From positions 158,079 through 222,078 of IMG/VR virus record IMGVR_UViG_3300037042_002125: DNA of 64,000 bases; one strand, given 5' to 3'. The position numbers and the translations under genes are program-made. The notes beneath the pieces are model-generated. The model was not told the DNA's origin and ran no database searches. It saw only the letters and a list, made by a program, of their open reading frames with translations. The stretch's first letter is position 1. Every line of letters starts with the position of its first letter. Positions 2,430-40,282 of this stretch are shown in pieces.

Positions 2430-3500
2430 ATGACAACCCCAACATCAACATCGTCTAGATCAGATCCAAAATCCCACCCAAAATCTTCAAATGGCAAGGC
2501 AACAATAAACAACTACAACCACTCAAAGTTGTTTGCCAAGCTGAAATCAATTGAAGAGACTATACCAAACAATCTCACCTCCTATCAGTACCTAAGTGTC
2601 CTTGACGAATTGATCTACCGTGGTCTGTATCCTATAATTGAAGGTACAAAATTCTTCGAGAACTTCTTGGCACAGATTCTTGGGTGGCAAACAATAAATT
2701 CGAAGCGCAAGGTCGTTGGGGTTGGAAGACAGGCCTTTAGTTCATACACCACATTGTATCTTCTCCTTGATGACCCAAAGCAACGCATAAAGCTTATCAA
2801 GAAGATGAAGATTGATAGGGCGGTCTTATTTGAGGCAATGCGTAGGTGGACATCGATCTCAGAGGAAATAGTTTCTATATCTGAGACAGACGTAATAACC
2901 TCTGATGCCTTAACACAAATTGCAGACCTTAGCGAAAGGGCTTCAATACGAGATGGGTATCATGTGATAGCCCTTTACAATCAAGTACACTACTGGCATA
3001 ACCAAGCAGTAGCTTTTAAATCTCAGATCTTAGAAAAGTACACTCGCCTGTGCCTTACCACTGCCCAACGTGATTACGTGCAGATGGATTGCCAGGGAGA
3101 TTTAGATGACATAATTCAAGTTTACTTCATGAGCGCAGGCAAGGCCATTGATAAATGTGACACCGAGAAGGGTGTTCTTACCACACATATTCAAAACTGG
3201 CTGCTCAGCGCCAAGAACGTAGTCATAGCTACCTATGTAAACGGGGCAGTTACGCAAACCAAGGCAAGTACCGCAGGTGCTTCTATCATTCGTACAATGG
3301 TAGATCACGTTAGCCTAGATGAAATCGAAAACATGATTGCAGAGGAATTAGATGACCCAGCAGAAAAAGAAGAGACGGTCTATCAGGTACGGAAAGTAAC
3401 ACGCTTCTTTGACAAGACAGGTATAGGTCGAATCCTTTTGGGCATACAAGACGTTCTATCAAAAGAAGATGTACAGGCACTGAGGGCTCACGCACTGTAA
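2430..3500 (+). CDS. phage sigma-70-like RNA polymerase sigma factor
   Basis: Region-2-like DLDDIIQVYFMSAGKAIDKCDTEKGVLTTHIQNWL (compare DLIQEG..GL..A..KFD..KG..F.TYA..WI). Confidence 0.7.
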   Translation: MTTPTSTSSRSDPKSHPKSSNGKATINNYNHSKLFAKLKSIEETIPNNLTSYQYLSVLDELIYRGLYPIIEGTKFFENFLAQILGWQTINSKRKVVGVGRQAFSSYTTLYLLLDDPKQRIKLIKKMKIDRAVLFEAMRRWTSISEEIVSISETDVITSDALTQIADLSERASIRDGYHVIALYNQVHYWHNQAVAFKSQILEKYTRLCLTTAQRDYVQMDCQGDLDDIIQVYFMSAGKAIDKCDTEKGVLTTHIQNWLLSAKNVVIATYVNGAVTQTKASTAGASIIRTMVDHVSLDEIENMIAEELDDPAEKEETVYQVRKVTRFFDKTGIGRILLGIQDVLSKEDVQALRAHAL

Positions 3501-3503
3501 ATA
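3496..3503 (+). promoter_or_regulatory. TGTAAATA motif (putative phage promoter)
   Basis: Recurrent intergenic octamer; overlaps the sigma stop codon, upstream of the clamp gene. Confidence 0.55.
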
Positions 3504-3551
3504 CAATAGTTAAGTGTAAGCATCTCTTTCTCAAGAATAGGAAAAACAAAC

Positions 3552-4622
3552 ATGCAATTCTCAATCGACTCTGAACTACTGGGCGGCACAATCCGTACTT
3601 TGCAGCGTATAGCCCAAGCCGTTTCTATCTCACTTGAGGTCGCCAAGGGCAACGTTCTTATCACAGGCACTGGCAACGGGAACTCTTGTTCCATCAATTT
3701 GCCTTGCAAGATACTCGAGAAGTCCGCGCAAAACAAATTCAGCATTGCCGCTGAAACGTTAGCTAACGCAATTGCAAAACGCAAGGACATGAAGATCACA
3801 ATCAAGGACACGTCCATTGAGCTGGCGAGTTCTCGGTATGCGGTTGAGCTCTTGATCAACCAGTTTGAACAGATTGAAGTTATCCCAGAAGCTGTCAAGC
3901 AAGACAAGAGCTTGAAGCTCAGTACAAAATTCCTTGATGCTATACGGGCCAACTTGAGCAAGATAGAGTTGAAGCCTTTGTTAAGTCTCTATGATTACAT
4001 TCCTATTGGTATCAAGAGCACTGACGAAGGTACGTTTGTTGCTTGCTTTGATACTTGGCAGTCGGCGTTTTTCTTTGACAAAGAAGTTACTGGCAAACTA
4101 GAGTTCACGTTGCCTAGCAATATCTTCATGACGATTGCCAAAGAGTTCAAGAACCAAAGCTACAAACTTTGCATCACCGACAGCACGGTATACGCCTACA
4201 ATGATTTCTTTGAGTTGGGCATTGCGCTGACGCAAACTGAAGGTGAGCAGGTTACGTTAGGTCACATGCTGGCTCTCTACAACAGTCTCAAGAAAGATAA
4301 AAGCGGCGTAAAGATCAAATTGAAGACAGAAGGCATAAACCAACTGATCGAAAATGCCAAAGCTGTCTACGAAAAGGATAGCACATTTACGTTCACTACC
4401 AAAGGTGACAAATGCAAACTTGTGCTCAAGAGTTCATTTGGCTCCATGAGCACGTTGGTCATGATGGAAGAAGCGCCCGCAAAGGACGTCAGCTTCTCTT
4501 GCGACTTCTCATTCTTTAGCACACTGCTTGCTAAAGCACCACCCACCCTTGAACTCAGAGTAAATGATAGGATGATGTTGTTTTCCAACAAGCCTGTCAC
4601 GTACCTCTTGAGTCTGGTATAA
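3552..4622 (+). CDS. dnaN: DNA polymerase III beta-like sliding clamp
   Basis: 356 aa, MQFSID..LL start, three-repeat alpha/beta pattern, replication context. Confidence 0.7.
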   Translation: MQFSIDSELLGGTIRTLQRIAQAVSISLEVAKGNVLITGTGNGNSCSINLPCKILEKSAQNKFSIAAETLANAIAKRKDMKITIKDTSIELASSRYAVELLINQFEQIEVIPEAVKQDKSLKLSTKFLDAIRANLSKIELKPLLSLYDYIPIGIKSTDEGTFVACFDTWQSAFFFDKEVTGKLEFTLPSNIFMTIAKEFKNQSYKLCITDSTVYAYNDFFELGIALTQTEGEQVTLGHMLALYNSLKKDKSGVKIKLKTEGINQLIENAKAVYEKDSTFTFTTKGDKCKLVLKSSFGSMSTLVMMEEAPAKDVSFSCDFSFFSTLLAKAPPTLELRVNDRMMLFSNKPVTYLLSLV

Positions 4623-4632
4623 GGGCTAGTCC

Positions 4633-5091
4633 ATGTCTACAGTAATTGAAGAATCCTCTCCAATGCCGTTGACGATGGACTTAGACATAGCAGAGTCCTT
4701 CAACAAGCGTCTAATAACGAGCTACATCTACCGAGGCCGGACATACTTCCTATTGTTCTACAAGAATGGGACGCCTGGCCCTTTTTACGTTGAGGATGCA
4801 CCCTACGCAGAGAACTCCTTGCTCTCAATTGGAGAAATCAAATGCAAGGCAGACGATCTTGTGATAGGTAACATCTTCTACACTAATGTAAATTACAGAT
4901 GTGAAGGCAGCTTTCTGCTAGTCTACAGCGGGGTGTTCAAACATTCCATCAACAAGAAATTGCCAAGGGACTTGAACATGTCCTTGTGGGCTAAGACTCC
5001 TTACATGCAAATCTTCCAAGAGAAGAATAGAGCAACGTTAGTAATTAGTCCTATGCTCAAGAATAGTATCAAACAGAATCTGGAGATCTAA
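4633..5091 (+). CDS. hypothetical protein
   Basis: 152-aa ORF in operon. Confidence 0.65.
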   Translation: MSTVIEESSPMPLTMDLDIAESFNKRLITSYIYRGRTYFLLFYKNGTPGPFYVEDAPYAENSLLSIGEIKCKADDLVIGNIFYTNVNYRCEGSFLLVYSGVFKHSINKKLPRDLNMSLWAKTPYMQIFQEKNRATLVISPMLKNSIKQNLEI

Positions 5092-5655
5092 ATGGCTAAC
5101 AAAAAAGAACAGAGTAGAAAAACCAAAGAGGTTGGCGGTGAGAGCCTTAAGAGATCTCTGCTTGAGGACGATACGTACAAACGTTACCGTAACATTGTCA
5201 AGGCTATCAAGGACAAAATTATTGTGGATGATATGGACGATGAAATAAATCGTCTGCATAGCGGGCGTATATCACGCACGTTGTATGGTACCACACCGGG
5301 CGGTGACAAGATCATGAACGCGGCGCTGCAAGATGCTTCCCACAGGTCCCGCATGGCTGAAATACGGGTGCGGGTATCTAAGCAAGCTGACCTGCTGGAC
5401 ATTACGTTGGAAGCTACACGCATCTACTTGGCTCGCCAGTTTGCAGACGAGGTGCCAGACATACGGACTAAAGGCGAACGCATGGCCTACTTCGATGCTC
5501 ACCTCACCAATGGAATTGTCATGCACTCCAAACTCAAATCATTGATATCTCGCATTGACGTGCTGATCAAAGACGTTGACCAAACTGGTTTTTCTTTGAA
5601 ACATTGCGTGGACATCCTTGAGCTGGTATACCACAACTCGGGGGCGAAGCAGTGA
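5092..5655 (+). CDS. helical hypothetical protein, possibly a UvsY-like mediator
   Basis: Helical composition, directly before the SF2 helicase; the function is inferred from position only. Confidence 0.5.
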   Translation: MANKKEQSRKTKEVGGESLKRSLLEDDTYKRYRNIVKAIKDKIIVDDMDDEINRLHSGRISRTLYGTTPGGDKIMNAALQDASHRSRMAEIRVRVSKQADLLDITLEATRIYLARQFADEVPDIRTKGERMAYFDAHLTNGIVMHSKLKSLISRIDVLIKDVDQTGFSLKHCVDILELVYHNSGAKQ

Positions 5656-7160: not shown

Positions 7161-7780
7161 AAGAGCAAGAGGAAGATCCCCGTTTCAAGAACAGGGGCAA
7201 GTTGAAGATACGGCTTGCTGAAAAGTACATTACGATAATGAAGAACAGAGGTGTCAACGGTGGAGTGTTCAGACAGAACCCCTTTGTGTTGATGCCTACG
7301 TCCTTCACTTCCGACGTTGAGGGTCTCAAGCCCAAAGTGTTTAGCCGTCAGAAGCAGTTCGAGATGTTTGACAAGTTCATGGAGTCTCCTTTTGAGCCTA
7401 TGAACTGTTGCATTGTATCTGCTCCTGATGACGGGAAGGCCAAGCTAATGGCAGCCTACATGATGCAGCACGCCATAGCCCAGCACAATAGCTACACGTC
7501 CTTGCCTATGTGGATTGATCTAACTGGCGGCTTTGACAATCCGCTCGTTGTAAATAAAGTGAAGCCCTCCTTGCTTGTAATAAACAATGTAGGAGTAGCA
7601 TCAACTCAATCCAAGATGGAAAAGCTTAGGGACATACTGGAAGTGTATAGTGACATACCGCGCATTGTAGTAGCAACTGGTTGTGACCCCTACTACTTCT
7701 TCATGCGTCACTTGTATCTGCCCATACACTCGCTGATGTACCTAACCAATTCATCTGTCAAAAAATCTATTGAACTCTGA
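7157..7780 (+). CDS. degenerate DnaC/IstB-like helicase loader
   Basis: Eroded Walker A (SAPDDGKAK) and Walker B (LLVINNVG); immediately upstream of dnaB. Confidence 0.5.
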   Translation: MKEQEEDPRFKNRGKLKIRLAEKYITIMKNRGVNGGVFRQNPFVLMPTSFTSDVEGLKPKVFSRQKQFEMFDKFMESPFEPMNCCIVSAPDDGKAKLMAAYMMQHAIAQHNSYTSLPMWIDLTGGFDNPLVVNKVKPSLLVINNVGVASTQSKMEKLRDILEVYSDIPRIVVATGCDPYYFFMRHLYLPIHSLMYLTNSSVKKSIEL

Positions 7781-26209: not shown

Positions 26210-26572
26210 TCAGGCCTCCTCTTTACCCTCTACCCCACGCACCATACGCCGTGCAGTCCTTACTTCGAGGTTCACCAACGCTTCTTCCATGTGTTGGATG
26301 GCTCGCTGGTTCTCATCGCAGCCAAATTTAGCATCCAAAAACTTTGTGCGGTGAATCAAGATCGCCAGCAAAGCCTCGTTGGTTAAGCCATTTACTCCAG
26401 ATTTTGGAACTGGGCCGTATTGAAACTTGATCAGACATGAATCTTCGCCTAAAGCAACTTCGTAATAGTGTCCAGTTACGTTCGAAATAATCCCACTAGG
26501 GAAGAAGGTTCGTCCTGCAATGGCTGTTACGGTCACCCCATTGTGGTCTTTGTAAATTTGTGGATCTGGCAT
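26210..26572 (-). CDS. tad1: Tad1-family anti-defence sponge protein
   Basis: IKFQYGP..GVNG.TNEALLAILIHR..F.CDEN..AI.HMEEAL..L..R..RR..RGVEG matches the Tad1 pattern as recalled; GGAG RBS. Confidence 0.7.
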   Translation of the reverse strand: MPDPQIYKDHNGVTVTAIAGRTFFPSGIISNVTGHYYEVALGEDSCLIKFQYGPVPKSGVNGLTNEALLAILIHRTKFLDAKFGCDENQRAIQHMEEALVNLEVRTARRMVRGVEGKEEA

Positions 26573-26585
26573 GGTGTAGGTTCTC

Positions 26586-27278
26586 CTATTTCTTTCCCAT
26601 TGATACAAGTGATAAAAATTCAGCTTTAGCAGTGGTAGTCTTGAACACACCACTCAACTTGGATGTAACCGTATCTGAGCAGGCATCTTCTACCCCACGA
26701 GTACGGACGCACATATGTTCTGCCTCTATCAAGACCGCAACGTGTTCTGTTCCAAGAACAAACTTTAGTGTCTCACATATTTGGCTAGCAAGACGCTCTT
26801 GTATCTGCGGACGCCTGCAGAAAAACTCAACGATACGGTTGATCTTACTCAGGCCCAACACCTTGTCTTTGGCTATGTACGCCACGTGGGCGCAACCAAT
26901 TATAGGAAGAATGTGATGTTCGCACGTGGAGTTGACAGTGATATTGCGTTCGAGAACCATCTCGTCTACTTGCATCTTGTTCTCGACAACAGTAGCCTTT
27001 GGGAAATTGTCGTAATCTAATCCCCAGAAGATTTCGTTGAGATACATCTTGGCAACACGCTTGGGAGTATCAGCCAAAGAGTCATCAGACAGATCCATAC
27101 CTAAAGCCTGCAAGATACCAGTTACGTGATCTTGGATTGCCTGTAGCTGAACAGATTTTGTAACCTCTGCATTATTGCTCGGAAGCCTTGTCATTGGCGT
27201 TTCGATGCCTAGGCTTTTCAAGTGAGCCTCGACTCTGCCACCCAGGAATACATCTGCTTTTGCGTCGTCAGTTTTCAT
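26586..27278 (-). CDS. folE: GTP cyclohydrolase I
   Basis: [37 protein letters not shown]. Confidence 0.97.
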
Positions 27279-27295
27279 TGTTATCCTTGTTTAGA

Positions 27296-28216
27296 TTAGG
27301 CCATTGAGGCGTATAGATGCATTTGGAGACACAGCCGGTAGCCCATATGCAAGGCGTAGTTGGCAGCGTACTCATGGTTTATTTGGTTCTCTTTCTGGTT
27401 GAGCAACCCTGGTGTCCAGAAACTAATCACTTCGTCTACAGTAGAACGCTCATGCAGGCTAGGTGTGTATGTACCGTCTGCACCCTTCTTTGTAAGCCGC
27501 AGGATTTTCGACTGTTGTGGCACATCGTTGTAGATGTTCATTGGGGATATATAGATTTCCCTGCCAGTGCGAGCCTTCCATTCTTGAGCCCATTGAGGTA
27601 CGTTCCAGTACGGGCTGTCAAAATCTTGCTTGACAACGAATTTCAAACACTGAACAGAATCTAGAACCTTATCGTTTGGTTTGAGGTACTCAGTAGGTAC
27701 ACCATTCTTCTCGCCACACTTGGGACTACATACAAACGTAACAAAGTCTGGCACTCTCGTGTTGAGCAAACCATTGCTTTCGATTTGGACATGCTTGTAT
27801 GCAAACTGTTGCCGCATCAAGAACTCATACAAGTTATCTTGCAGCAAAGGCTCTCCACCAGTGACGACCAATATGCAGCCGTAAGGCCCAAGCTTTCTGT
27901 CAAACTTTGTTTCCTTATCAAAGCTCTTAGGCAATACCCAAAGAGGTGCAGGAGTCCCGCCTTCATTCCAGTGATCGCATATGGTAGCGTAGGCTTTCGC
28001 CTCTATTTGCTCGTAGGTAAGCCAGTCACCTTGGTCAAAGAACGTGTCGCAGAAGTGACAATTGAGATTGCACTTAGCAAGACGTATGAACAAGGCAGGC
28101 ATTCCTGCATAAGGTCCCTCGCCTTGTATTGTGAAAAACATGCTCGTCACGTACAGGGAATTCGCGGGTGCGTCTTTGAAGAACTTCTTGCCAGTTATTT
28201 CGTTAGTTCCAAACAT
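27296..28216 (-). CDS. queE: 7-carboxy-7-deazaguanine synthase (radical SAM)
   Basis: FFTIQGEG..FIRLAKCNLNCHFCDT, VTGGEPLLQ, IESNG, SPK, LQMH. Confidence 0.95.
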   Translation of the reverse strand: MFGTNEITGKKFFKDAPANSLYVTSMFFTIQGEGPYAGMPALFIRLAKCNLNCHFCDTFFDQGDWLTYEQIEAKAYATICDHWNEGGTPAPLWVLPKSFDKETKFDRKLGPYGCILVVTGGEPLLQDNLYEFLMRQQFAYKHVQIESNGLLNTRVPDFVTFVCSPKCGEKNGVPTEYLKPNDKVLDSVQCLKFVVKQDFDSPYWNVPQWAQEWKARTGREIYISPMNIYNDVPQQSKILRLTKKGADGTYTPSLHERSTVDEVISFWTPGLLNQKENQINHEYAANYALHMGYRLCLQMHLYASMA

Positions 28217-28224
28217 GGTTCATC

Positions 28225-29025
28225 CTATACAGCATCTTTGCTTGTCTCATATCGACCCTCAAATGCCTTGAGAGAGTTTGCAAGGGCGATCTCGTAGTTG
28301 TCACTTAGCCACTGTTTGATCGTTGCCAGATCAGGCGGCGTGGTTTGTTTGTCCAACCAGGCAGTAAGGAAGTAGTTGTCTTGGTTAGCCCCATCCCACA
28401 GCTTGAGATACCGATCTACGGCATAGTACCCATACTTGAACGTACCTGCCTTGTACCCTTTGTCTTGGCGGAATTGATTCAGCAAAGCCTTTGCCATGTA
28501 GCGGGTGTAGAGGTTACGCAAGTCAAAGTCAATTGATCTTGAAAGGCTGAACAACAAAGACCAAGGGTTAAGGCCAAGCAACCCGTGTGCTTCCACGTAC
28601 TCACTTGCGCTGTTCAAATTCAGGCTAGCCATTAGCATCTTTGCCAAAGACAAAGTCTTAACTTTATCCACAGACAAATCTGCAGACATTTGAAGGCTTC
28701 GGTAGATGCTCTCAATTGCTTCATCGGCGTCTTGGCTATCAATCACTGATTGGCTGAGCATGAAGTGAACTGCGTCTACTATCTCCATTTTGCAGTTACC
28801 TAGGTCTTGCTTATCTCCTGACCACCACTCGTAGCCGTAGCTGTTAACGAACTCACCGATCTCTTGAGAGGCTGCTAGGCTGTAATCAAACTCCTGGGTG
28901 CGGCCTTTGTTAAGCCAATCCTCGTTGTAGGCTTTGGTGTTCAAAGCAATCTGGTTAAATACCATTTCACGTATCATCGAATACGCTGGTGAGGTTTTGA
29001 AATCTTCGCCGAAGAGGTTAACCAT
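28225..29025 (-). CDS. dut: dimeric (all-alpha) dUTPase
   Basis: EIGE..YEWW, MEIVDAVHF, YMAKALLNQFRQDKGY, W.G..DN; Campylobacter-type family. Confidence 0.85.
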   Translation of the reverse strand: MVNLFGEDFKTSPAYSMIREMVFNQIALNTKAYNEDWLNKGRTQEFDYSLAASQEIGEFVNSYGYEWWSGDKQDLGNCKMEIVDAVHFMLSQSVIDSQDADEAIESIYRSLQMSADLSVDKVKTLSLAKMLMASLNLNSASEYVEAHGLLGLNPWSLLFSLSRSIDFDLRNLYTRYMAKALLNQFRQDKGYKAGTFKYGYYAVDRYLKLWDGANQDNYFLTAWLDKQTTPPDLATIKQWLSDNYEIALANSLKAFEGRYETSKDAV

Positions 29026-29027
29026 GG

Positions 29028-29570
29028 TCAGTCCTTGTTGGTGTTTGAGATAAATGAGCTACGGCTCTTTGGAGTCTCCCACCAATCGACACGAGAGCAG
29101 GTAACCCCCAAAGCCTTCATCTTTATTGAGACTAAAGTGTGCATCCACTTTGCAAAATTCTCGCTCGTTGGTACAAAGTCTACAACTAGCATACCACCAT
29201 ACAGCTCTTGCAATAAAGGGGACATTGAATCGTTTTCAACAGTCCATGCTACCTCCACTCCTTCCAGCTCTACTGGTTGTAATCTAGATGTTTCTGGGAA
29301 TAGAATTAACCTTAGTGGATCATTTCTGTCAATGACAAACTTGTGATCAATAAAAGTATTTAGCCACTTCTTAAGCCACTCCAAGTGCCTAAAATCTGTA
29401 ACCATACCTCGCACCAACGTGTCTGAGCTTAAAAAGACTTGAACTTTTGCTTCATGGCCGTGCAGATGCCTACAGGCGCATTTCAAGTCTTCTGAAAATC
29501 TACCGTCTAATTCTTGACTCCAAACTCTATGGCCATAACAGAACTCAAAAGTCTTATCAATGTTGAACAT
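29028..29570 (-). CDS. queD: 6-carboxytetrahydropterin synthase
   Basis: FCYGHR, CRHLHGH, GMVTDF, DHKF, PTSEN, WETPKS. Confidence 0.92.
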   Translation of the reverse strand: MFNIDKTFEFCYGHRVWSQELDGRFSEDLKCACRHLHGHEAKVQVFLSSDTLVRGMVTDFRHLEWLKKWLNTFIDHKFVIDRNDPLRLILFPETSRLQPVELEGVEVAWTVENDSMSPLLQELYGGMLVVDFVPTSENFAKWMHTLVSIKMKALGVTCSRVDWWETPKSRSSFISNTNKD

Positions 29571-29592
29571 GGTTTCTTCCTTTATATCAATG

Positions 29593-29606
29593 TAATTTTA
29601 TTTACA
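29593..29606. promoter_or_regulatory. overlapping divergent motifs: TAATTTTAT (+, endonuclease) and TGTAAATA (-, queD)
   Basis: TAATTTTATTTACA contains both motifs back to back. Confidence 0.5.
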
Positions 29607-29632
29607 CTCTAAGTTACTACATGGTGTAAACT

Positions 29633-30613
29633 ATGAACCTAAATACCGCAGTAAAAAAATTCCTATCTTATGCAGATAAAAATGGCATACGTAGACTTTA
29701 TGAAGTCCTACCTGGTTGGTTGAAAGCTAATTACCCGTCTGTTTATTTCTCTACTCCTGAGTTCAAATTGTTAGAACACCTGCCACACAAGAACGATCAC
29801 GCATACAGGGATATGTCTAAAAAAGACAAGGCTAAAGTAAAGGCCTCACGTACACAACTATATAATGCTATTGCTAAACAGGCTTTGAAAATCCGACATT
29901 GCTACGGTTGTGGAGTCGAACTTACCTATAATTTAACAGGTAGTGTCCCGTGTTCTTTACGGTATGTAAGGACTACACGAAGGTCCTGTTCTATGAAATG
30001 CAGTTCAAATTCCAAAGAAACAAGAGACAAAACCTCCGCAACCAACCTTGCAAAATATGGTAATAAGTGTTCCTTAAACGGGAAAGATCAGATAAAGGCA
30101 AAAAAGGCAACCTGGAAGAAAAATCTAGGTGTATCCAACCCTTCACAAAGTCCTGCCACTGTTAGTAAGATACTAGAGGCTAGGTACGGGCGAAAAACAA
30201 TTGATTTAGCTGGAAAGAAATTTTCATACCAAGGCTACGAGAACGTTCTTCTAAAACACTTATTTCACCTAGGCATAACTGCAAACAATGTATCAACCAA
30301 AGCGTCCGTAATAGGTATGTTTGATTACAAGTATTTTGGCAAGATATTCAAGTACCTTCCAGACATAAAAGCAAAAACGTCATCTGGAAAAATTTGGTAC
30401 TTTGAAGTAAAATCTACTTATACTTTGTGTGGAAGTACTTCTATGCAGAAGCAACTGTGGTATAAAGCTAAATCTATGTTGGAGGTACACAAAAAGAACT
30501 TCCGCGTAGTTCTGTGTTCTAGAAACGAGATTCTTATGAAGGCTGACAACCTAGATGAACTGACTGCAATTATAACCTACGTTAAGAAAAAAGGGAAAAC
30601 TATTCCTAGGTGA
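29633..30613 (+). mobile_element. free-standing putative homing endonuclease (PD-(D/E)XK, Zn-binding and TNL.KYG DNA-binding module), antisense to the operon
   Basis: CYGC..CSMKC, TNLAKYG..NPSQ, YLPDI...FEVKS; AT-rich; inserted into the que operon. Confidence 0.75.
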
Positions 30614-30713
30614 CCAACCCATGTAGTAGATTGCAATGTGAGTCTGCTCGCCATTGCCTAAAGGCACAGGAGAAACCAGCTTCGTGTCCGTAACGTTTTG
30701 TTGATTGAAACAT
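30606..30713 (-). pseudogene. queD: 5' remnant of a second, different QueD/PTPS-family gene
   Basis: MFQSTKRYGHEAGFSCAFRQWRADSHCNLLHG then a stop; keeps its GGAAG RBS and upstream TGTAAATA. Confidence 0.75.
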
Positions 30714-30760
30714 TTTTACTTCCAGTAAAGTAGATTGGTGTAGTGTATTGCTAACACTTC

Positions 30761-30768
30761 TATTTACA
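30761..30768 (-). promoter_or_regulatory. TGTAAATA motif
   Basis: Upstream of the queD remnant. Confidence 0.55.
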
Positions 30769-30798
30769 ACTCGATCAAAAGACTTTTTACAAGGGAAG

Positions 30799-30904
30799 GG
30801 GTACACACAATCAGGAAACGCAGTCTTAGAAATGTGAGCGGAGTGGCCTAACGATCTGAATGACGGGACCGTCCTAAGTAATGCGACTGCTGTCGTGTGT
30901 ACCC
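30799..30904. ncRNA. putative structured non-coding RNA element (~106 nt)
   Basis: Nested stems GGGTACACAC/GTGTGTACCC, GCAGTC/GACTGC, CTTAG/CTAAG and GACG/CGTC in an intergenic gap. Confidence 0.45.
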
Positions 30905-30908
30905 AAAA

Positions 30909-31373
30909 CTATCTAAGAGGAACGCGGAGTTTCCCTTTAGACTTACTAGCGGTGGAAGATTGTGTTTCCACTTTTGTTTGCGTCTCAGTTGACGTAGATG
31001 TATTGTCCTGATTGCTTGGGGAGTTAGGCAATCTTCCTGAGTACGCATCAACTAATTTGTCAGCTACCTTAGCACCTGACCATATTGCCATGTACGCAAT
31101 GAAAATCCACGCATCAATCTTTCCTTTGTTGTTTACCAACATGTACATTATTGCCCACGTAGATACACCTAGGCATACAAAGATTGCAAGGCGAAAGGCA
31201 GAAGGTTTATTGAACTCATCGCGTAGCATGTCAGAGAAATCAAAATCATTGTCTGGGTTCTTCTGAGTCTTCCACAGGACCCAACCACCAAGAGAAAGAA
31301 TGACTAGCAATATGAGTGCTGGAAAATCTATGGTAGTCACCCACCATGTCTCAATTCCCTTCAGTGCGTCCAT
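30909..31373 (-). CDS. three-TM membrane protein (holin-like)
   Basis: Three hydrophobic helices and a polar/basic C-terminal tail. Confidence 0.65.
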   Translation of the reverse strand: MDALKGIETWWVTTIDFPALILLVILSLGGWVLWKTQKNPDNDFDFSDMLRDEFNKPSAFRLAIFVCLGVSTWAIMYMLVNNKGKIDAWIFIAYMAIWSGAKVADKLVDAYSGRLPNSPSNQDNTSTSTETQTKVETQSSTASKSKGKLRVPLR

Positions 31374-31385
31374 AGCAATCCCTTC

Positions 31386-31961
31386 TTAAGTTCTTGATCG
31401 GTAAGTCTTACGCTTACTCTTACGCCTACGTCGAAATTTAGGTCGTTTGGGTTGGGGTTTGGGTTTCAACTCTGGTGCCCCTGGTAGGTACACCCTCTGC
31501 CTAGCTCGTGTCGTTCTCTTGGACAGTTCGCCTGCTCTCCAAGCAAGACGCGCCAGTATGCTCATCCTTATATCAGGTTCAACAGGGACAATCTTTGCCT
31601 TCTTGACAACACGCATCAGGCCGTATTCACTTAAGACAAGCACACCTACTCGACTAGGTATGCGAGACATCAGCTCTTTATCCTTGTTGATCTTTCGAGC
31701 TACATCGACTGTGAATGCCAAGTACACACGATCTGCAAATTTCAAATACTCATGCCACTTAGAATCAGATCGGAAATCAGCTACACTTGATTTAACCTCT
31801 ATGAGGACCAAGTCTCCTGATATCTTGTTGCCAATTACGTCTGCCCGACGGGTTCCCCACGATTGCAAACCAACCTCATAGGCCATTGAATAGCGGTACC
31901 TAAAGAACATAAAAGCAGACGCTTTTTTAAGTGCGTCTGCTACTTCACGTCTAGTAGCCAT
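31386..31961 (-). CDS. mmcB: MmcB-family PD-(D/E)XK nuclease
   Basis: RRADVI..IEVKSSVADFRSDSKWHEYLKFADRVY. Confidence 0.85.
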   Translation of the reverse strand: MATRREVADALKKASAFMFFRYRYSMAYEVGLQSWGTRRADVIGNKISGDLVLIEVKSSVADFRSDSKWHEYLKFADRVYLAFTVDVARKINKDKELMSRIPSRVGVLVLSEYGLMRVVKKAKIVPVEPDIRMSILARLAWRAGELSKRTTRARQRVYLPGAPELKPKPQPKRPKFRRRRKSKRKTYRSRT

Positions 31962-38821: not shown

Positions 38822-40282
38822 TTACTCTCCGTCCTCGTCATCTTCGTCAGTTCCTTGTGTTGCTTTCCCTTGGGCTGAGAACAAAATCTCAGCCTTGCCG
38901 CTTGCCATCTGTGCAAAGCACATCTTACGCAGGTTCATAGGCTTGGGTATTCCCGCTTTCTTGCATACGCTGGCCATGTCGTCTTTTGACCCAAGTATCC
39001 ACAGCTTGAAGTCATCCCATGACAACGGACGTGTTGACTTGGAATGGTTCCAGAACAGAGTAAGCGCCGTACGGCCTTTGCCTTTGAGCTGCCCACTTGC
39101 TTTGAGGTAGTGCATGGTGTCGTACACTGGATCAACTCCGTGTGCTGTACCATTGCTATCCTTAGTCCACAGGCGGATGAATCCTTCTCGATCAGATTCA
39201 GACAGTTTGTTCTTAACTGCCTTAACGCTAATGTACTTGTAGAGGTCCTTGCCGCCGTCAATAGAACGTTCTACCTCATAACCCTTCTTGACCTTGTCTT
39301 CCTTAGGCCACAGTTTTATAGCACTAAGGGCACGAGGGTAGAACCGCAGACGTGCGTCACTGTTATATCGAAGCGCCTTTCCACAAGGTTCCGCTTCCTT
39401 AGGACCAAACATTGCCATGGGTACGTCGCGCAATTGGTTAACACCAAGCACAGCTACTTTCTTGCTAGCCAGGGAACCCTTAACCCGCGGCAGATTCTTT
39501 GAGAACATGCGTGCCTGTAGTGCCAGCGAGTTATCAGAGTTGTCTTCATCCTTGTAGTCTGGGTTCATGTTAGGGTAGCTATCAACAATTACAACTCCTT
39601 GCAGACCAGAGTCGGGAGCAGGTACGTATATGCCAGCGCCATAACGCTTAGCCATAGTTGCGTCTGCATGTTCCTTCATGTGTGCATTAGACTTATCGTC
39701 ATCATATACTAGCCACCACTTGCCGTTCAACAGCTTCTTATCAGGCAGTCTACGCAAGATGGCTGCAAACCAGTTGAAGAAGGATACCCCTTTGGTGCTT
39801 GAGCTATATCTCACTCGTGGAGGGACCAACCAGTCGCCTGTCTTATCATCCTTCTTGCCGAACAGTTCTTCCTTTGACATCTTAATACCAGACGTCTTGA
39901 GAATGCTTTTGACATACGGCAGAGAGTTGCCTGTGCTACCTTCAAAGTCACGCAGGGAAATGATAGGCACCTCATGTTTGATTGCACTCGCCATTACCAA
40001 CAAGGCTGCCGTTGTCTTTGCACTCTGCTCTGGACCAAAGTTTGTGTACCATGCTGGCCGTATCCCGCCGCCCAAAATGTAATCAAGCACAAGGCTGCCT
40101 GTGGACATTGGCACAACATCATCGAGAGTGTCGGCATCAGATAGCTTCTTGGCCACCTCATCAAGAACCCTTGTGTACCCTGCGTAGGGGTTGAACGCCT
40201 TGTCAACGGCTTTGTCGACCTTGTTAGGTTTGATATCCTTGTTTGGTTTAGAAGGTTTTTTAGGTGTCTTTGTTTTTGCCAT
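38822..40282 (-). CDS. recA: RecA/UvsX-like recombinase
   Basis: STGSLVLDYILGGG, GPEQSAKTT, IVDS, ALQARMFS, NQLR, GKALRYNSDARL, KNK; start MAKTK at 40282. Confidence 0.92.
   Translation of the reverse strand: MAKTKTPKKPSKPNKDIKPNKVDKAVDKAFNPYAGYTRVLDEVAKKLSDADTLDDVVPMSTGSLVLDYILGGGIRPAWYTNFGPEQSAKTTAALLVMASAIKHEVPIISLRDFEGSTGNSLPYVKSILKTSGIKMSKEELFGKKDDKTGDWLVPPRVRYSSSTKGVSFFNWFAAILRRLPDKKLLNGKWWLVYDDDKSNAHMKEHADATMAKRYGAGIYVPAPDSGLQGVVIVDSYPNMNPDYKDEDNSDNSLALQARMFSKNLPRVKGSLASKKVAVLGVNQLRDVPMAMFGPKEAEPCGKALRYNSDARLRFYPRALSAIKLWPKEDKVKKGYEVERSIDGGKDLYKYISVKAVKNKLSESDREGFIRLWTKDSNGTAHGVDPVYDTMHYLKASGQLKGKGRTALTLFWNHSKSTRPLSWDDFKLWILGSKDDMASVCKKAGIPKPMNLRKMCFAQMASGKAEILFSAQGKATQGTDEDDEDGE

Follow-up and report, generated by a model that had tools for sequence, protein, structure and literature searches.

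A predicted nuclease gene of homing-endonuclease type and a substitute queD gene lie inside the original queD gene of a freshwater phage

How does a phage come to carry the first codons of one queD gene, an antisense gene for a putative homing endonuclease, and a complete queD gene of a different subfamily, one directly after the other? We observed this arrangement in a 64,000-nt stretch of DNA (the window; positions 158,079 to 222,078 of IMG/VR record IMGVR_UViG_3300037042_002125) from a 222-kb uncultured freshwater phage. The initial annotation, made from the sequence alone, interpreted it as a mobile cassette of a nuclease and a rescue allele that cuts the resident queD at its active-site codons and supplies a resistant substitute (a cleave-and-rescue drive). 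All but one of the elements it described were confirmed, and its inference that one queD was replaced by another is supported, with the qualifications given below.

The first element is a 35-codon open reading frame on the minus strand (30609-30713; ATG at 30713-30711, TAG stop at 30608-30606). Its first 32-33 residues match the N-termini of phage QueD proteins of the STK.YGH..SCAFRQWRA..HC..HG type (hereafter the RQWRA type); a tblastn search found matches in 87 phage records (best E 3e-11), and the QueD proteins of Motura, PhiXhv-15 and BCSR5 found the fragment in this genome with E 4e-12, so this is not a chance match. Only residues 1-32 of about 158 remain, and the fragment gives no Pfam hit, although the intact genes of relatives (L017, L008 and L030, introduced below) do match PF01242. 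The homology stops after His-Gly, and codons 33-35 (L-V-T) and the stop come from the antisense of the 3′ end of the nuclease gene. The remnant keeps its RBS and a promoter-like TGTAAATA motif (30761-30768, minus strand), which would now drive the 35-codon remnant and antisense transcription into the nuclease gene. This motif occurs 32 times in the genome (about 10 expected) and often lies 20-60 nt upstream of an RBS and ATG. Further upstream, between the queD promoter and a gene for a 154-aa membrane protein, is a conserved structured element (30799-30905, minus strand) closed by a 12-bp stem; it has no Rfam match, but is retained in a distant relative (L010), in which six pairs change on both sides and stay paired.

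The antisense gene (29633-30613, plus strand) encodes a protein of 326 aa; the homology of the fragment ends at 30617, 3 nt beyond the stop codon of this gene, and the two reading frames overlap by 8 nt. The protein is assigned to the Pfam family DUF7487 (PF24308; 59.1 bits against a cut-off of 27, E 7.7e-16, residues 124-268) and weakly matches a PHROG annotated as ‘homing endonuclease’. It has an N-terminal helical region, a four-Cys zinc finger, repeats (TN..KYG / GV.NPS) and a C-terminal PD-(D/E)xK domain, whose residues D244, E258 and K260 are, like the four Cys, invariant in nine homologues of 37-90% identity. An AlphaFold model (pLDDT 85) matches folds of PD-(D/E)xK nucleases: the top Foldseek hits in the PDB are Cas4 SSO0001 (E 7.8e-4, probability 0.98), ACE1, RecU/PrfA, NucS and Hjc, with low TM-scores (0.2-0.36) because only the C-terminal domain matches.

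The second queD (29028-29570, minus strand) is a full-length protein of the PTPS/QueD family (Pfam PF01242, 84 bits against a cut-off of 22.4, E 8e-24; PDB 3jyg, E 3.6e-46), in which the YGH, C..HLHGH and DH motifs are visible. TIGR03367 (the QueD equivalog) is its best NCBIfam hit, but at 53 bits this falls below the cut-off of 89 bits. It shares only 34% identity over 77 residues with the RQWRA type; we refer to it as the QueD180 type. The spacer between this gene and the nuclease gene (29571-29632, minus strand) carries a TGTAAATA motif of its own (29599-29606) and an RBS, and the nuclease ATG lies 26 nt upstream of the motif, on the other strand. The initial annotation also placed a divergent late-type motif for the nuclease here; however, we found only a 7-of-8 match (TGTAAACT) directly abutting the nuclease ATG, and no clear promoter or strong RBS for that gene. 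A scan for sigma-70 promoters and terminators gave no more sites than shuffled sequence.

Is the fragment the first exon of a gene that is restored by splicing, or one half of a split gene whose polypeptides assemble? The fragment does keep its promoter-like motif, RBS and start codon, but no 3′ part of the RQWRA-type queD exists anywhere in the 222-kb genome except its last five codons, which are already fused to the other queD. Rfam and ARAGORN searches found no intron, riboswitch or tRNA in the region (at E up to 10 only chance Rfam hits were found, and one tRNA-like hit inside the QueD180 coding sequence, 29424-29527, with 28.9 bits against a cut-off of 29, was judged spurious). The nuclease gene is on the opposite strand, and the 35-residue piece lacks most of the fold. 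This reading is therefore refuted on sequence grounds.

Megablast and blastn searches of the locus against 50,697 phage records found no close relative (only distant folE and queE matches), IMG/VR scans with the dUTPase-like protein encoded downstream (see below) and with the nuclease alone found nothing, and a scan with the nuclease alignment found only distant members. Very close relatives, however, are known: two nuclease-free relatives (L016 and L017, the latter covering the whole locus) and a 67-kb contig in run X8 carry the intact RQWRA-type queD at exactly this locus. L016 differs from the window at one of the 587 bases next to the junction, and the remnant is identical to codons 1-32 of the intact genes in L016 and L017; the same TGTAAATA motif, at the same spacing, precedes the intact queD in L010, L016 and L017. 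The window and L016 match through 30617 and are unrelated from 30616 downward; the left junction falls right after the Cys-x3-His-Gly codons. On the other side, blastn homology between L017 and the window resumes at 29045, with a shared NTN(TN)KD-stop and an identical 28 nt after the stop; the right junction lies at about 29045-29048. Consistent with this, the X8 contig joins 29045 to 30619 with 364 other letters in between.

About 1.57 kb (the nuclease gene, the promoter and codons 1-175 of the new queD, 29046-29570) thus replaced codons 33-153 of the resident gene. The new queD is not wholly foreign: it is an in-frame chimera that uses the last five codons and stop of the resident gene (N-T-N-K-D-stop, 29028-29045). 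It is the only complete queD in a genome that presumably still needs one for its FolE-QueD-QueE deazaguanine pathway. The downstream genes of this pathway, identified by Pfam hits and by blastn matches to phage folE and queE genes, encode a dUTPase_2-like NTP pyrophosphatase (28225-29025), QueE (27296-28216) and FolE (26586-27278), all on the minus strand (26586-29025), and the same gene order occurs in L010, L012, L014 and L017.

An assembly chimera, or donor DNA that hitch-hiked in with the nuclease, might produce a similar picture, as the window comes from a metagenome assembly, but both possibilities are refuted. The same architecture and junctions occur in three further, independent assemblies (L007, L020 and, from its gene map, a 217-kb ENA contig, ERZ1426841), and contigs of other runs span each junction of the cassette allele with no differences. 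The fragment and its upstream 490 nt match the nuclease-free L016 with the single difference noted above, and are resident rather than imported DNA. The fragment and the upstream spacer are also nearly invariant between the window and L007 (one and four differences), but the same block is the ordinary resident sequence of nuclease-free phages. Both alleles occur in one sediment sample: run X3 holds the nuclease-free allele at a depth of about 10 and the cassette allele at about 3-4.

Where did the new queD come from? Nuclease-free relatives L012, L013 and L014 carry the QueD180 type at this locus with the same promoter motif and a homologous upstream spacer (the spacer of the window differs from that of L007 at one of 62 positions), and the new queD is 78% and 68% identical to those of L012/L013 and L014, respectively, which gives a plausible donor. 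Comparison of the window's flanking proteins with those of RQWRA-type and QueD180-type relatives was uninformative on donor and recipient backgrounds (all were 43-77% identical, with no consistent pattern). The founding event was probably an illegitimate join, linking a break in the RQWRA queD to the 3′ end of a nuclease gene that sat, as its homologues still do, just upstream of the queD of a related QueD180-type phage.

Mobility of the cassette is supported indirectly. The junctions are identical in the window and L007, although the two cassettes differ by 8.8% and sit on different flank haplotypes: the flanks of the window are closer to nuclease-free genomes than to L007 (on the left, 1 versus 20 mismatches in 587; on the right, 37 versus 66 in 517). 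Both alleles co-circulate, and the nuclease gene is under purifying selection (dN/dS 0.14 at dS 0.35, against L007). Homologues of 44-47% identity lie divergently, 60-69 nt upstream of an intact queD, in two other phage lineages (L008 and L029-L031), and another sits beside folE-queE in L021. We consider it more likely than not that, during co-infection, the nuclease cuts the intact RQWRA allele at or near the Cys-x3-His-Gly codons, that the cassette-bearing genome is immune because it lacks that site, and that the break is repaired from the cassette genome with the two flanks as homology arms, copying the nuclease and the substitute queD into the recipient. Cleavage and biased inheritance are inferred here and not demonstrated, and the junction marks where DNA was joined, which is not necessarily where it was cut (known free-standing phage endonucleases often cut hundreds of bases from their gene; PMC2988022). 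Synonymous differences at the Leu-His-Gly codons of the incoming queD (CTG CAC GGC, against CTA CAT GGG in L013 and in the RQWRA site) look like immunising changes, but nuclease-free L014 has CTT CAC GGC, and we draw no conclusion from them.

It is also possible, though less likely, that the nuclease is a passenger: a single illegitimate recombination between an RQWRA-type phage and a QueD180-type phage that happened to carry the nuclease gene upstream of its queD would have produced the replacement, with the nuclease not cutting queD and the allele persisting through ordinary recombination and drift. The locus is naturally polymorphic for the two queD types even without the nuclease (L010, L016 and L017 against L012, L013 and L014), homologous recombination in the flanks alone could explain why they are younger than the cassette, and the related nucleases in L008 and L029-L031 sit beside intact RQWRA-type queD genes, so RQWRA queD is not a target for every family member. 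However, one junction lies 3 nt from the nuclease stop codon and the other inside the same ORF, an unlikely pair of breakpoints for a random event; nuclease homologues are linked to queD or its pathway genes in four separate contexts; and purifying selection on a selfish nuclease is hard to maintain without ongoing homing or some other function. An inactive or domesticated nuclease, left from a past homing event with both alleles simply segregating, appears improbable. No expression signals were recognised for the gene, antisense transcription from the resident promoter would run across it, and a truncated 167-aa paralogue elsewhere in the genome (which also matches DUF7487) shows that members of this family do decay; but the full-length ORF is kept in every copy seen, and the catalytic and zinc-finger residues and the dN/dS ratio argue against decay here.

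Homing endonuclease genes normally avoid harming their host by hiding in introns or inteins, by sitting between genes or, rarely, by splitting a gene into pieces that still assemble. This locus suggests a different solution, with the before and after alleles both preserved in nature (they coexist in sampled lakes): the element carries a distantly related, complete copy of the gene it destroys. If the nuclease does cut the intact allele, the locus would give a concrete mechanism for non-orthologous gene displacement in phage metabolic modules, would be a natural counterpart of engineered home-and-rescue drives, and would add a probable site-specific nuclease from an uncharacterised family (DUF7487) with a candidate target defined to within a few base pairs. 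A fuller version of this idea, in which a PD-(D/E)xK homing endonuclease cuts the active-site codons of one queD family and spreads by converting that gene in situ into itself plus a non-orthologous queD, so that selfish homing directly drives gene displacement in phage populations, would be a third way for a free-standing endonuclease to live inside a coding sequence, alongside self-splicing introns or inteins and functional gene splitting. It remains tentative, and we regard it as slightly less likely than not.

Among known systems, the free-standing homing endonucleases of T4-like phages (Seg and Mob proteins; ‘intronless homing’, marker exclusion) are likewise encoded outside any intron or intein, with presence/absence polymorphism between close relatives, conserved flanks and apparent co-inheritance of flanking DNA (PMC2988022). 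Those genes sit between genes and co-convert homologous DNA, whereas here the gene sits inside an ORF and travels with a non-homologous substitute gene, and its catalytic family is PD-(D/E)xK with DUF7487, not GIY-YIG or HNH. Endonuclease insertions that create split genes (Aeh1 mobE in nrdA, T4 mobA in the gene 39/60 topoisomerase and seg43(25) in gene 43) also place a free-standing endonuclease gene in a functionally critical part of an enzyme gene (PMC2988022); in those cases both halves are kept and the polypeptides reassemble, whereas here the downstream two-thirds of the gene is gone and function would be supplied by the queD of the cassette. In collaborative or trans homing (a free-standing endonuclease plus an endonuclease-less intron that interrupts its target, e.g. 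F-CphI with psbA, or mobE with I-TevIII), the nuclease-bearing genome is immune because a linked element interrupts the target and the two move together (PMC2988022, PMC6083498), as would be the case here; but the interrupting and rescuing element here would be a whole substitute gene with its own promoter, not a self-splicing intron. Finally, synthetic home-and-rescue (HomeR) and cleave-and-rescue gene drives link a nuclease to a cleavage-immune functional copy of the gene it disrupts. No drive behaviour has been measured for the phage element. Cleave-and-rescue proper, the label used in the initial annotation, acts in trans without homing and is the weaker analogy; here, as in HomeR, the cassette would sit in the target gene itself (PMC7968924), although the nuclease is natural and protein-guided and the presumed rescue copy is a distant paralogue, not a recoded copy.

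The window is the last 64 kb of a single 222 078-bp virus record, which is rated 93% complete by CheckV. Sequences from this record occur in freshwater lake and sediment metagenomes, but the collection of sequenced phages holds no close relative. Apart from one plus-strand ORF, the genes of interest run on the minus strand, in the following order: an MmcB-like gene (31386-31961), a 154-aa membrane-protein gene (30909-31373), a 195-nt spacer, a 35-codon ORF (30609-30713, with its stop at 30606-30608), the plus-strand ORF of 326 aa (29633-30613), a 62-nt spacer, a 180-aa PTPS/QueD gene (29028-29570), and, after 2 nt, a dUTPase_2-like pyrophosphatase gene (28225-29025), followed by QueE (27296-28216) and FolE (26586-27278). 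We also observed an element of roughly 105 nt closed by a 12-bp stem (30799-30905; given on the minus strand, although its strand is uncertain) between the 154-aa gene and the candidate queD promoter. Its fold is kept in the distant relative L010 (at 1113-1225), with six pairs changed on both sides and still paired, but it has no Rfam match; it could be a 3' stabiliser or terminator of the upstream gene, or a small RNA. Relatives carry a 123-aa gene with a weak Acb2/Tad1-hairpin Pfam hit directly after folE (L012 4758-5129; L014 9275-9646; and the gene map of the ERZ1426841 contig), whereas the window's ORF at that position (26210-26653) gave no Pfam hit.

The 35-codon ORF is a fragment of a real QueD. 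Its first 32-33 residues match the N-termini of phage QueD proteins of the RQWRA type (named for a residue motif) in 87 phage records (66-77% identity in the rows listed, best E 3e-11), and the full-length QueD proteins of phages Motura, PhiXhv-15 and BCSR5 hit it at E 4e-12 to 5e-10. The match stops after His-Gly, and the same search found no C-terminal part of an RQWRA-type QueD anywhere in the genome, and no other queD apart from 29028-29570. The two QueD types both belong to PF01242, but they share only 34% identity over 77 residues. The 180-aa type (hereafter QueD180) matches PDB 3jyg (E 3.6e-46) and belongs to a large family of more than 2000 metagenomic proteins; its closest matches among sequenced phages, at about 40% identity, are in PA5oct-like Pseudomonas phages, Campylobacter phages and one large Vibrio phage. 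Pseudomonas phage PA5oct itself carries two QueD-like genes about 1.8 kb apart (5001-5519 and 7296-7766), so the presence of two PTPS-family genes in one phage genome is not unique to this locus. A tRNA-like Rfam hit (28.9 bits against a gathering score of 29) was found inside the QueD180 coding sequence (29424-29527, minus strand), with a 27-nt insertion in the anticodon arm; ARAGORN finds no tRNA, so this hit is probably due to chance.

The plus-strand ORF (29633-30613) can be assigned to the Pfam family DUF7487 (59 bits against a cut-off of 27) and weakly matches a PHROG annotated as homing endonuclease. An exhaustive profile-free search found seven full-length relatives at 39-90% identity, and more than a thousand distant proteins share residues 110-300. 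In an alignment of nine full-length members, four cysteines (C90, C93, C119 and C123) and the motif P243-D244...E258-x-K260 are invariant. When an AlphaFold model of the protein (mean pLDDT 85) was used in a fold search of the PDB, only PD-(D/E)xK nucleases were found at the top: Cas4 SSO0001 (E 7.8e-4), ACE1, RecU/PrfA, NucS, Hjc and Exo5 (the TM-scores are low because only the C-terminal domain aligns). We conclude, from sequence and predicted structure alone, that the protein is a PD-(D/E)xK nuclease with an N-terminal DNA-binding region. A 167-aa paralogue of the nuclease (DUF7487, 34% identity) is encoded outside the window (genome positions 39698-40201, equal to 3199-3702 of the sequence we call L028, minus strand), between a 499-aa gene and a 362-aa gene. 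It lacks the N-terminal region and the zinc finger, so it is probably a decayed copy; a 121-aa ORF with HNH-like Cys/His motifs (judged by eye) lies about 2 kb away, at L028 955-1320.

Comparison with relatives resolves the history of the locus. A search with the nuclease found a 90%-identical copy on an NCBI metagenome contig (L007), which has the same architecture, including an identical 35-residue fragment; the architecture is repeated in another assembly (L020) and in a 217-kb ENA contig. A search with the neighboring 154-aa protein then found contigs that lack the nuclease. One of these, L016 (1218 bp), matches the window from about 31203 down to 30617, with 1 mismatch in those 587 nt; beyond 30617 it continues as an intact RQWRA-type queD, where the window continues into the antisense 3' end of the nuclease gene. 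Another, L017 (3376 bp), covers the whole locus: MmcB, the 154-aa gene, the spacer, a 158-aa RQWRA queD, and then 2 nt and the dUTPase-like gene. Bases 1-2495 of L017 match window 33122-30619 at 95.9% and bases 2860-3376 match window 29045-28529 at 92.8%, but the 364 nt in between have no counterpart in the window.

A codon-level comparison places the left junction after CAT GGG T, at 30617|30616, which is 3 nt beyond the nuclease stop codon, whereas the right junction lies five codons before the queD stop. The window's QueD180 ends in ...S-N-T-N-K-D-stop, that of L007 in ...S-N-T-N-T-N-K-D-stop, and the RQWRA QueD of L017 in ...P-N-T-N-T-N-K-D-stop; the 28 nt that follow the stop are identical in all three. 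The shared tail is a short (Asn-Thr)n codon repeat that varies in length (NTNKD in the window, 29031-29045; NTNTNKD in L007, 1405-1425, and in L017, 2854-2874). So about 1571 nt (3 nt, the nuclease gene, the 62-nt spacer and codons 1-175 of a QueD180-type gene) replaced codons 33-153 of the resident queD. The incoming gene is fused in frame to the resident tail and stop, and sits the same 2 nt upstream of the next gene's ATG as the resident gene did. The direction of change is unambiguous: both ends of the RQWRA gene flank the cassette, and an intact gene cannot be regenerated from that allele without a template.

Other relatives that lack the nuclease carry the QueD180 type at the same locus: in L012/L013, MmcB is followed by a queD at 78% identity (with dUTPase_2, QueE and FolE further downstream), and in L014, MmcB and a 127-aa gene are followed by a queD at 68% identity and then by dUTPase_2, QueE and FolE. 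All queD genes of this phage group, of either type, are preceded by TGTAAATA 35-52 nt upstream of the start codon. This octamer occurs 32 times in the genome against about 10 expected (in the window at 3496, 7549, 20229 and 22723 on the plus strand, and at 29599, 30761, 41213, 44674, 49430, 55938 and 59307 on the minus strand); it often lies 20-60 nt upstream of an RBS and ATG, and sometimes follows 'aaac'. It is a candidate phage promoter that appears to resemble the T4 late-promoter element TATAAATA. The window's 62-nt spacer aligns with the spacer of L012/L013 from the motif to the ATG. The cassette therefore carries the native candidate promoter of a QueD180-type phage, with the nuclease ATG 26 nt beyond it on the other strand.

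The nuclease family is linked to queD in other lineages as well. In the contig L008 (nuclease at 44% identity), the nuclease gene lies divergently 63-69 nt upstream of an intact RQWRA queD, with a 150-aa gene on the other side and MmcB beyond it. In L029-L031 (47% identity), it lies 60 nt upstream of an intact RQWRA queD, which is followed by QueC and an Asn-synthase-like gene, and in L021 (37% identity) it converges on folE-queE. The family's usual home is therefore the spacer just upstream of a queD, and the window's cassette keeps that arrangement relative to the incoming queD.

Both alleles were found when Logan contigs of four sequencing runs were aligned to positions 28500-31500 of the window. 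Run X8 holds a 67-kb contig (depth 14) with 29045 joined to 30619 and 364 other letters in between, which is the nuclease-free allele. Run X3 holds the same joint at depth about 10, and also holds cassette contigs at depth about 3-4, one of which spans the right junction with no differences. Run X2 holds a cassette contig that spans the left junction with no differences.

Between the window and L007, dS is 0.35 for the nuclease (dN/dS 0.14), 0.38 for QueD180 (dN/dS 0.06) and 0.36 for the 154-aa gene (dN/dS 0.14), but 0.79 for the dUTPase-like gene (dN/dS 0.13) and 1.27 for QueE (dN/dS 0.07). The two cassettes differ at 8.8% of sites yet have identical junctions, which indicates a single origin. 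The window's proximal left flank differs from nuclease-free L016 at 1 of 587 sites and from L007 at 20 of 586, and its right flank differs from nuclease-free L017 at 37 of 517 sites and from L007 at 66 of 517. So the cassette sits on different flank haplotypes that it shares with nuclease-free genomes. This is what repeated homing would produce, but ordinary recombination in the flanks could produce it too. L016 is itself mosaic, as its MmcB end and the 5' part of its 154-aa gene (L016 1-290 against window 31204-31490) resemble L007, whereas from about window 31203 to the junction it matches the window, which shows frequent recombination in this population. Purifying selection on the nuclease over the divergence from L007 favours continued function.

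On this comparative evidence alone, we infer that the nuclease cuts the intact RQWRA allele at or near the Cys-x3-His-Gly codons, and that the cassette allele is immune because it lacks the right half of that site. Repair from a co-infecting cassette genome would then use the resident flanks as arms (on the left the 154-aa gene, the spacer and queD codons 1-32; on the right the tail and the dUTPase-like gene), and the carried queD would keep the FolE-QueD-QueE pathway working. The most likely founding event is an illegitimate join between a break in an RQWRA queD and the 3' end of the nuclease gene of a QueD180-type donor, with a second crossover in the short shared tail. Besides FolE, QueD and QueE (26586-29570, together with the pyrophosphatase), the phage has the PF08761 dUTPase/MazG-like pyrophosphatase but no Pfam-detectable QueC or TGT/DpdA in the whole genome (a divergent DpdA3 was not searched for). 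This gene set recalls the CDG-pathway phages with complete guanine replacement (phiST, CP220) described by Cui et al. (PMC10516641).

Free-standing endonucleases, intronless homing and marker exclusion are well known in T4-like phages. Three known insertions into coding genes (Aeh1 mobE in nrdA, T4 mobA in gene 39/60 and seg43(25) in gene 43) all gave split genes whose products reassemble (PMC2988022), and in collaborative homing immunity comes from a linked intron (PMC2988022, PMC6083498). Our literature searches found no description of an arrangement such as the one observed here, and none of a nuclease in queD. Here the interrupted gene is neither spliced nor reassembled, but is substituted by a distant paralogue that travels with the nuclease; the nearest logical analogue is the engineered home-and-rescue drive (PMC7968924).
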